Source of the DNA: Perkinsus chesapeaki ATCC PRA-425
Lineage: Eukaryota; Protista; Perkinsozoa
Assembly (NCBI GenBank): GCA_013115145.1
Contig: JAAPAO010000050.1
Location: forward strand, 38,784 to 102,783
Length of the DNA stretch: 64,000 nt
Reading direction: 5' to 3'
The notes under the pieces: generated by a model
The model's input: the letters and a program-made list of their open reading frames with translations, nothing else
Databases searched by the model: none
Told to the model about the DNA's origin: nothing
In this document: piece after piece, positions 23,236 through 23,336 of the stretch
How positions within the stretch are numbered: position 1 is the first letter of the stretch
Layout of the letters: each line of letters opens with the position of its first letter
Position numbers and translations under genes: made by a program

Positions 23236-23336
23236 GAGGTATAGTTGGGTTGTTATTAACAACCCAACTATACCTCTCAAAGCTCAGCTACCTCTCAGTA
23301 CTCAAAGCTATTAACAACTTGTTAATAGCTTTGAGT
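23236..23336. other. Double palindrome: two-sided hairpin excision footprint of target gttgttaa
   Basis: 20-bp arms around t23256 and 18-bp arms around c23318. Left flank ends gttgtta, right flank starts ttgttaa; the centres are the complements of target bases 8 and 1. Confidence 0.85.

Follow-up and report, generated by a model that had tools for sequence, protein, structure and literature searches.

Two long palindromes beside a Perkinsus chesapeaki gene as a probable excision footprint of a hAT-like transposon

How do two long and perfect palindromes come to stand side by side in the spacer between two genes, and do they obey the same rule as the 22-nt scars of the same region? We addressed this question for a 101-nt stretch of the clam and shellfish parasite Perkinsus chesapeaki (assembly GCA_013115145.1, contig JAAPAO010000050.1), which occupies positions 23236–23336 of the window, i.e. 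the whole 64-kb stretch of DNA that was analysed. The scar starts 107 nt beyond the stop codon of the PDZ-domain gene FOL47_008085 (window minus strand, stop at 23443) and lies within the spacer separating this gene from a convergent 158-aa gene. The end of a plus-strand ORF (22942–23244) falls inside the left arm of the scar; this ORF is unannotated and without a Pfam match, and the idea that the scar sits behind a stop codon was dropped. A search of public runs found the stretch in five runs from two studies. In the four runs examined, which come from two studies and possibly all from the source strain, it is unchanged (0 differences) in independently assembled contigs, ruling out an assembly artefact.

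The scar is composed of the following elements:

23236–23255, plus strand: retained left flank, which forms the first arm of the left palindrome; its last 7 nt, 23249–23255 (GTTGTTA), are positions 1–7 of the target-site duplication
23256, plus strand: T at the middle of the left palindrome, complementary to site base 8 (A); putative apex of the left flank hairpin
23257–23276, plus strand: left P-nucleotide tract of 20 nt, which repeats the left flank exactly in reverse complement (100% complementary)
23277–23299, plus strand: filler of 23 nt, with TCAAAGCT probably from the right tail and TACCTCTCA probably from the end of the left tail together with the filler's first 3 nt
23300–23317, plus strand: right P-nucleotide tract of 18 nt, which repeats the right flank exactly in reverse complement (100% complementary)
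23318, plus strand: C at the middle of the right palindrome, complementary to site base 1 (G); putative apex of the right flank hairpin
23319–23336, plus strand: right flank as retained; its first 7 nt, 23319–23325 (TTGTTAA), are positions 2–8 of the target-site duplication

The left palindrome (23236–23276) is therefore odd and perfect, with the arm GAGGTATAGTTGGGTTGTTA followed by T and its exact reverse complement (20+T+20), and the right palindrome (23300–23336) is built in the same way from the arm ACTCAAAGCTATTAACAA around a C (18+C+18). Between them lies the filler TCAAAGCTCAGCTACCTCTCAGT. On re-inspection, this layout proved identical to that given in the initial annotation, which had described a 20-nt copy around T, a 23-nt filler, and an 18-nt copy around C.

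Both palindromes give back one and the same 8-bp site, GTTGTTAA. The left flank ends with G-TTGTTA and is followed by T, and the right flank is preceded by C and begins with TTGTTA-A. The T at the left centre is complementary to the A that follows the right TTGTTA, and the C at the right centre to the G that precedes the left TTGTTA, so that the proposed relation of the two centres to site bases 8 and 1 holds on either side. For a given palindrome pair, such an agreement in register at 8 positions is expected by chance with a probability of 4^-8 = 1.5e-5.

The 22-nt scars have the form site positions 1–7, reverse complement of the site, site positions 2–8. We found 22 exact copies of this form in the 64-kb window, compared with 0.0002 expected by chance. 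If the centres are left free, 27 structures consisting of a 6-mer, the inverted 6-mer, and the 6-mer again are present, and in 22 of these 27 both centres follow the complement rule, where 1/16 would be expected. With other core sizes, only 0–2 structures turned up, and centreless versions were absent from the window, where the scars show a single fixed size, a core of 6 corresponding to an 8-bp site. We then paired all odd palindromes lying 8–400 nt apart: three of the 149 candidate pairs are in register (23256/23318, 51068/51105, and 56224/56248), compared with 0.002 expected, and a looser scan, in which one arm could contain a mismatch or the partner could lack a perfect arm, added two more (61483/61585 and 42179/42219). 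Shuffled sequences yielded 0–2 palindromes and no partners. Every long palindrome in the window has a single-base centre; palindromes with a 0-, 2-, or 4-nt centre and arms of at least 10 nt are missing from it. The suggestion that the long palindromes share the 8-bp geometry of the 22-nt scars is thus well supported, with this pair and at least two other pairs of the window in register.

The window also provides a direct empty-site control, which applies to the basic rule and not to the long form. A paralogous segment near 41.68 kb, 72% identical, contains only the 8-bp site (41680–41687), and compared with it the 22-nt scar at 47675–47696 adds exactly 14 nt. The diverged duplicates 39246–41901 and 46340–47921 (67–72% identity) lie in a scar-dense region and are useful as internal empty-site controls. 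Among the 22 reconstructed 8-bp sites, G is found at position 1 in 10, T at position 2 in 8, A at position 7 in 10, and C at position 8 in 10, against a background of ∼0.22–0.27. In this small sample (n=22), the G1/T2...A7/C8 bias amounts to a weak palindromic trend that is reminiscent of hAT target preferences. Hermes and hobo, both hAT elements, prefer nTnnnnAn; position 2 of GTTGTTAA is a T and position 7 an A. Some 22-nt scars abut or overlap (38331–38367, 42449–42497, and 42926–42963; for example, the site of scar 38346 lies inside scar 38331), which suggests that insertion and excision took place more than once at a single spot.

Four further two-sided footprints, the last one a probable case, resemble the 101-nt scar:

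51051–51128, plus strand: second two-sided long footprint, centres 51068/51105, site ATCGTTAA, arms of 17 and 23 nt (one mismatch), direct joint at a 4-nt microhomology (CTTT), no filler
56217–56266, plus strand: third two-sided footprint, centres 56224/56248, site ATTCCGGA, perfect arms of 7 and 18 nt, direct joint with a 2-nt tail overlap
61467–61601, plus strand: fourth two-sided footprint, centres 61483/61585, site TATACTAC, arms of 16 and 16 nt (one mismatch), filler of 66–69 nt
42172–42228, plus strand: probable fifth footprint with shorter arms, centres 42179/42219, site TTCACAGG, arms of 7 (one mismatch) and 9 nt, filler of 23 nt

Over these five scars, the arms measure 7–23 nt and mostly 16–23 nt. 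The filler of 61467–61601 has no match of 12 nt or longer elsewhere in the window, and that of 42172–42228 holds an odd palindrome of its own. The window also contains long odd palindromes that stand alone, with arms of 10–26 nt: 44298–44346 (arm 24), 45073–45125 (arm 26), 42470–42496 (arm 13), 43478–43498 (arm 10), and 34031–34073 (arm 21, one mismatch). None of these five has an in-register partner within 200–400 nt, and they may be one-sided footprints in which the other end was resected beyond the site. Several scars and two of the long footprints lie between minus-strand ORFs matching MutS domain V and MutS domain II (48935–56346), which are 6 kb apart. If these ORFs belong to one MutS-family gene, excision scars fill its introns.

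The joint between the two palindromes preserves a second kind of information. If the palindromes are opened hairpins, the left 3′ tail ends with ...TATACCTC, and the right tail, in top-strand sense, begins with ACTCAAAGCT.... The 9-nt sequence CTCAAAGCT, which comprises the filler start TCAAAGCT and the preceding C, is found at 23276–23284 and again at the start of the right tail (23301–23309). A second 9-nt sequence, TACCTCTCA, occupies 23289–23297 and matches 23271–23279, i.e. the end of the left tail and the first 3 filler nt. Because this copy contains the first 3 bases of the filler, the first addition must have preceded it. Together, the two copies account for 17 of the 23 filler nt, a coverage reached by only 1 of 2000 random fillers (P ∼5e-4); the reuse of both arms that had been noticed in the filler is thereby put into numbers. 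The two copies do not account for the remaining 6 nt (CAGC and GT). TCAAAGCT also occurs 60 nt upstream at 23209, which makes the template of the first filler piece ambiguous. Both tails carry the 8-nt inverted site TTAACAAC, which a canonical scar would have used. Since it is intact in both, the usual annealing site was on hand and yet remained unused. The filler statistics and this unused site support the earlier proposal of templated end-joining in place of joining through the target-site duplication.

Insertions taken from sequence near the break and short terminal microhomology, the marks of templated end-joining, are both seen here, and the sister joints lie at 4-nt and 2-nt microhomologies. 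Polymerase-theta-mediated end joining, for whose properties we rely on the summary in PMC6635534, resembles the present joint in its filler of short break-adjacent copies, one of them spanning the joint of an earlier round, and in its minimal terminal microhomology. It differs in that 6 filler nt are here untemplated or lack a known source, and the polymerase itself is a presumed one. As judged from its sequence, the filler agrees with repeated rounds of templated synthesis, as known from polymerase theta, with the enzymes involved remaining putative. In the sister species P. marinus, Ku70, Ku80, Lig4, MRE11, and RAD50 are listed, and the polymerase entry is one combined POLA/POLQ-group gene (PMC6635534 Table S1). 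Missing classical end joining (NHEJ) was considered as the cause of the odd repair and rejected in view of the Ku70, Ku80, and Lig4 entries of P. marinus.

We propose that the scar is most probably the natural excision footprint of a hAT-like element, in which two flank hairpins were nicked 18–20 nt from the apex. The resulting ends would have undergone templated end joining with little microhomology in place of annealing at the 8-nt inverted site. hAT transposases join the 3′-OH of the flank strand to the opposite strand, which yields flank hairpins, and in the Hermes mechanism the first nick falls one base into the flank. A covalently closed hairpin that is nicked away from its apex leaves a perfect palindrome around a single base. 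In the proposed sequence of events, a cut-and-paste transposon with an 8-bp target-site duplication would formerly have resided at GTTGTTAA. At its excision, the transposase would have nicked one strand one base inside each flank and joined the 3′-OH to the opposite strand, turning each flank into a covalently closed hairpin with the complement of the outermost site base as its apex. Each hairpin would then have been opened by a host nuclease in the strand that leads away from the apex, at a distance of 20 nt on the left and 18 nt on the right, which would have created long self-complementary 3′ tails. The complementarity between the apex base and the lost site base points to a first nick one base inside the flank, and likewise to an opening nick on the strand leading away from the apex, which gives a 3′ tail; a nick in the other strand followed by fill-in would place the original base at the centre. 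The opening distance, initially estimated at about 20 nt from the tip, can be read directly from the arm lengths and is 20 and 18 nt here and 7–23 nt over the five two-sided scars.

In the usual repair, both tails would anneal at their common 8-nt inverted site TTAACAAC and leave a 22-nt scar. Here, the tips of the tails would have been joined: the left tip may have primed on the right tail via ∼1 nt of homology and copied TCAAAGCT, and a later round may have copied TACCTCTCA across the new joint, in an iterative synthesis of the polymerase-theta type. Fill-in would finally have fixed both full palindromes in duplex DNA. We infer the order of these steps, the nuclease, the polymerase, and the transposon family from the observed geometry, the shared register, and the templated filler.

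A more far-reaching reading, which we regard as possible and offer tentatively, takes the long two-sided footprints for the unprocessed form of every excision scar in the genome. Hairpins would then routinely be opened ∼16–26 nt from the apex, the distance expected of an incision of the MRE11/RAD50-CtIP type rather than of apical nicking of the Artemis type, and the 22-nt scar would arise either when the tails anneal at the 8-nt inverted site or later, through slippage between the two direct repeats of the TTAACAAC type that every long footprint still contains. The 101-nt scar contains a 10-nt direct repeat, TATTAACAAC, at 23254–23263 and 23309–23318, which consists of the inverted site and two chance bases. 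Removal of one copy together with the intervening DNA leaves exactly the canonical 22-nt scar, and slippage between the copies would bring about this conversion. The short scars could therefore derive from long footprints that are unstable.

The ancestral empty allele would have been 69 nt shorter and have read ...GAGGTATAGTTGG-GTTGTTAA-TAGCTTTGAGT..., as deduced from the retained flanks. Neither an empty nor an occupied allele of the GTTGTTAA site was found; the four runs from two studies show the scarred form only, without any variant or skipped form. The window holds no paralogue of the scar region, relatives of a 291-aa ORF adjoining the scar were not found within the size range searched, and an exact look-up of a 355-aa ORF returned no record. 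An exhaustive search returned the source protein itself. The only orthologue is that of P. olseni, with a protein 41% identical, and blastn finds nothing alignable between the P. olseni spacer and that containing the scar. The syntenic locus (JABANN010000095.1, 17.7 kb) comprises the PDZ gene, a small gene, and CDC5/Cef1. Exact 22-nt scars number 0 in these 17.7 kb of P. olseni versus 7 in the 27-kb P. chesapeaki counterpart. One odd palindrome with an arm of 10 nt is present at 11939–11959 of the P. olseni locus, ∼270 nt past the PDZ orthologue. Pfam scans of ∼34 ORFs revealed no transposase in the window, nor does the window contain a convincing element with terminal inverted repeats (TIRs) and a target-site duplication (TSD). 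A candidate with TIRs and an 8-bp TSD (41656–47642) was rejected as within chance expectation (∼0.15).

The mechanism behind such excision footprints is already known; a literature description of such scars in Perkinsus was not found. Two features expected of hAT-type footprints are present: the 8-bp duplication can be recovered from the flanks (GTTGTTA and TTGTTAA combine to GTTGTTAA), and the tracts are centred, on both sides, on the complement of the element-adjoining base. In the footprints of the hAT element Ac/Ds, P-nucleotide palindromes are likewise centred on the complement of the transposon-adjoining base, and in S. cerevisiae they reach arms of up to 20 nt, with microhomology at most joints (PMC5873905). 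The Ac/Ds footprints of Saccharomyces cerevisiae, Arabidopsis, and Candida albicans share with our scar the palindromic P-nucleotide insertions on both sides and the 8-bp TSD (PMC5873905). They differ from it as experimental footprints of one introduced element, whereas the scar described here is a natural one in a protist genome. Moreover, both long tracts are intact here, with a templated filler between them, and the diverse product spectrum of Ac/Ds contrasts with the single stereotyped 22-nt default product of this genome. By this comparison, the Ac/Ds footprint spectrum of budding yeast appears to be the nearest known thing.

V(D)J coding joints also derive from ends that are hairpin-capped by a transposase-type enzyme, and off-centre opening of these hairpins results in palindromic additions. 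Joints with long P nucleotides are alike in both respects. Unlike the structures described here, which are all odd, they come from hairpins without an unpaired apex base, have even palindromes, and lack an 8-bp duplication. A joint of the RAG/Transib type would show even palindromes and, for Transib, a 5-bp TSD, whereas the site found here is 8 bp long and neither centreless palindromes with arms of at least 10 nt nor centreless triples occur in the window. RAG, Transib, and hAT are compared in PMC5499845.

An element outside the hAT superfamily could have left the scar by the same mechanism, be it a Mutator-like or another flank-hairpinning transposase with 8-bp duplications, or a domesticated nuclease of that kind. 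Mutator-like elements (MULEs) indeed have TSDs of 8–10 bp and form flank hairpins (PMC5499845). Their footprints would be expected to show this variable TSD, hairpins with two equal strands, and mostly precise excision, whereas the scars of the window use one fixed size, a core of 6 and thus an 8-bp site, and all palindromes are odd, with a one-base centre. Muta1, the only MULE characterised in this way, is reported to have a 43+43-nt hairpin without an odd base, duplications of 8 or 9 bp, and more than 90% precise excision. The complement-centred palindrome is, in addition, the published signature of Ac/Ds (PMC5873905). We therefore consider a non-hAT element unlikely and an element of the hAT type the probable source.

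In principle, the palindromes could have originated without any transposon, by template switching during replication or by fold-back synthesis where the DNA was broken, as template switching is able to create or perfect inverted repeats and a weak inverted repeat, TCAAAGCT...AGCTTTGA, is already present in the flanks. Yet snap-back synthesis requires a loop of several bases, which excludes it as the origin of a perfect palindrome around a single base, and the centres here are single-base throughout. Furthermore, snap-back synthesis predicts neither a shared 6-mer with two complementary centres (1.5e-5 by chance) nor the recurrence of the same rule in 22 short scars and four other long pairs, and we judge this explanation very improbable. 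Least likely of all, the twin hairpins could be a selected functional element, such as a transcript 3′ end or terminator common to the convergent genes, as their position 107 nt past a stop codon between convergent genes and their perfect stems might suggest, but the arms are unique local-flank sequence with no motif common to the window's long palindromes, the syntenic P. olseni spacer contains nothing alignable, and excision fully accounts for the geometry.

The common 22-nt scars erase the position at which the hairpins were cut, whereas the 101-nt scar and its four sisters keep it. The specific value of the scar lies in its having preserved both the opening distance and an alternative type of joint, and across the footprints three joint types are seen: templated filler, 4-nt microhomology, and 2-nt microhomology. 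The long perfect palindromes of the window, otherwise puzzling, are now tied to transposon excision, and they offer a view, from sequence alone, of how hairpin-capped breaks are processed in a shellfish parasite. For annotators, they are a warning that perfect stem-loops beside Perkinsus genes may be repair scars and not signals. If the long footprints are indeed the unprocessed form of the excision scars, the genome of a non-model parasite would hold a natural record, open to counting, of the distance at which hairpins are opened and of the choice between repair pathways.
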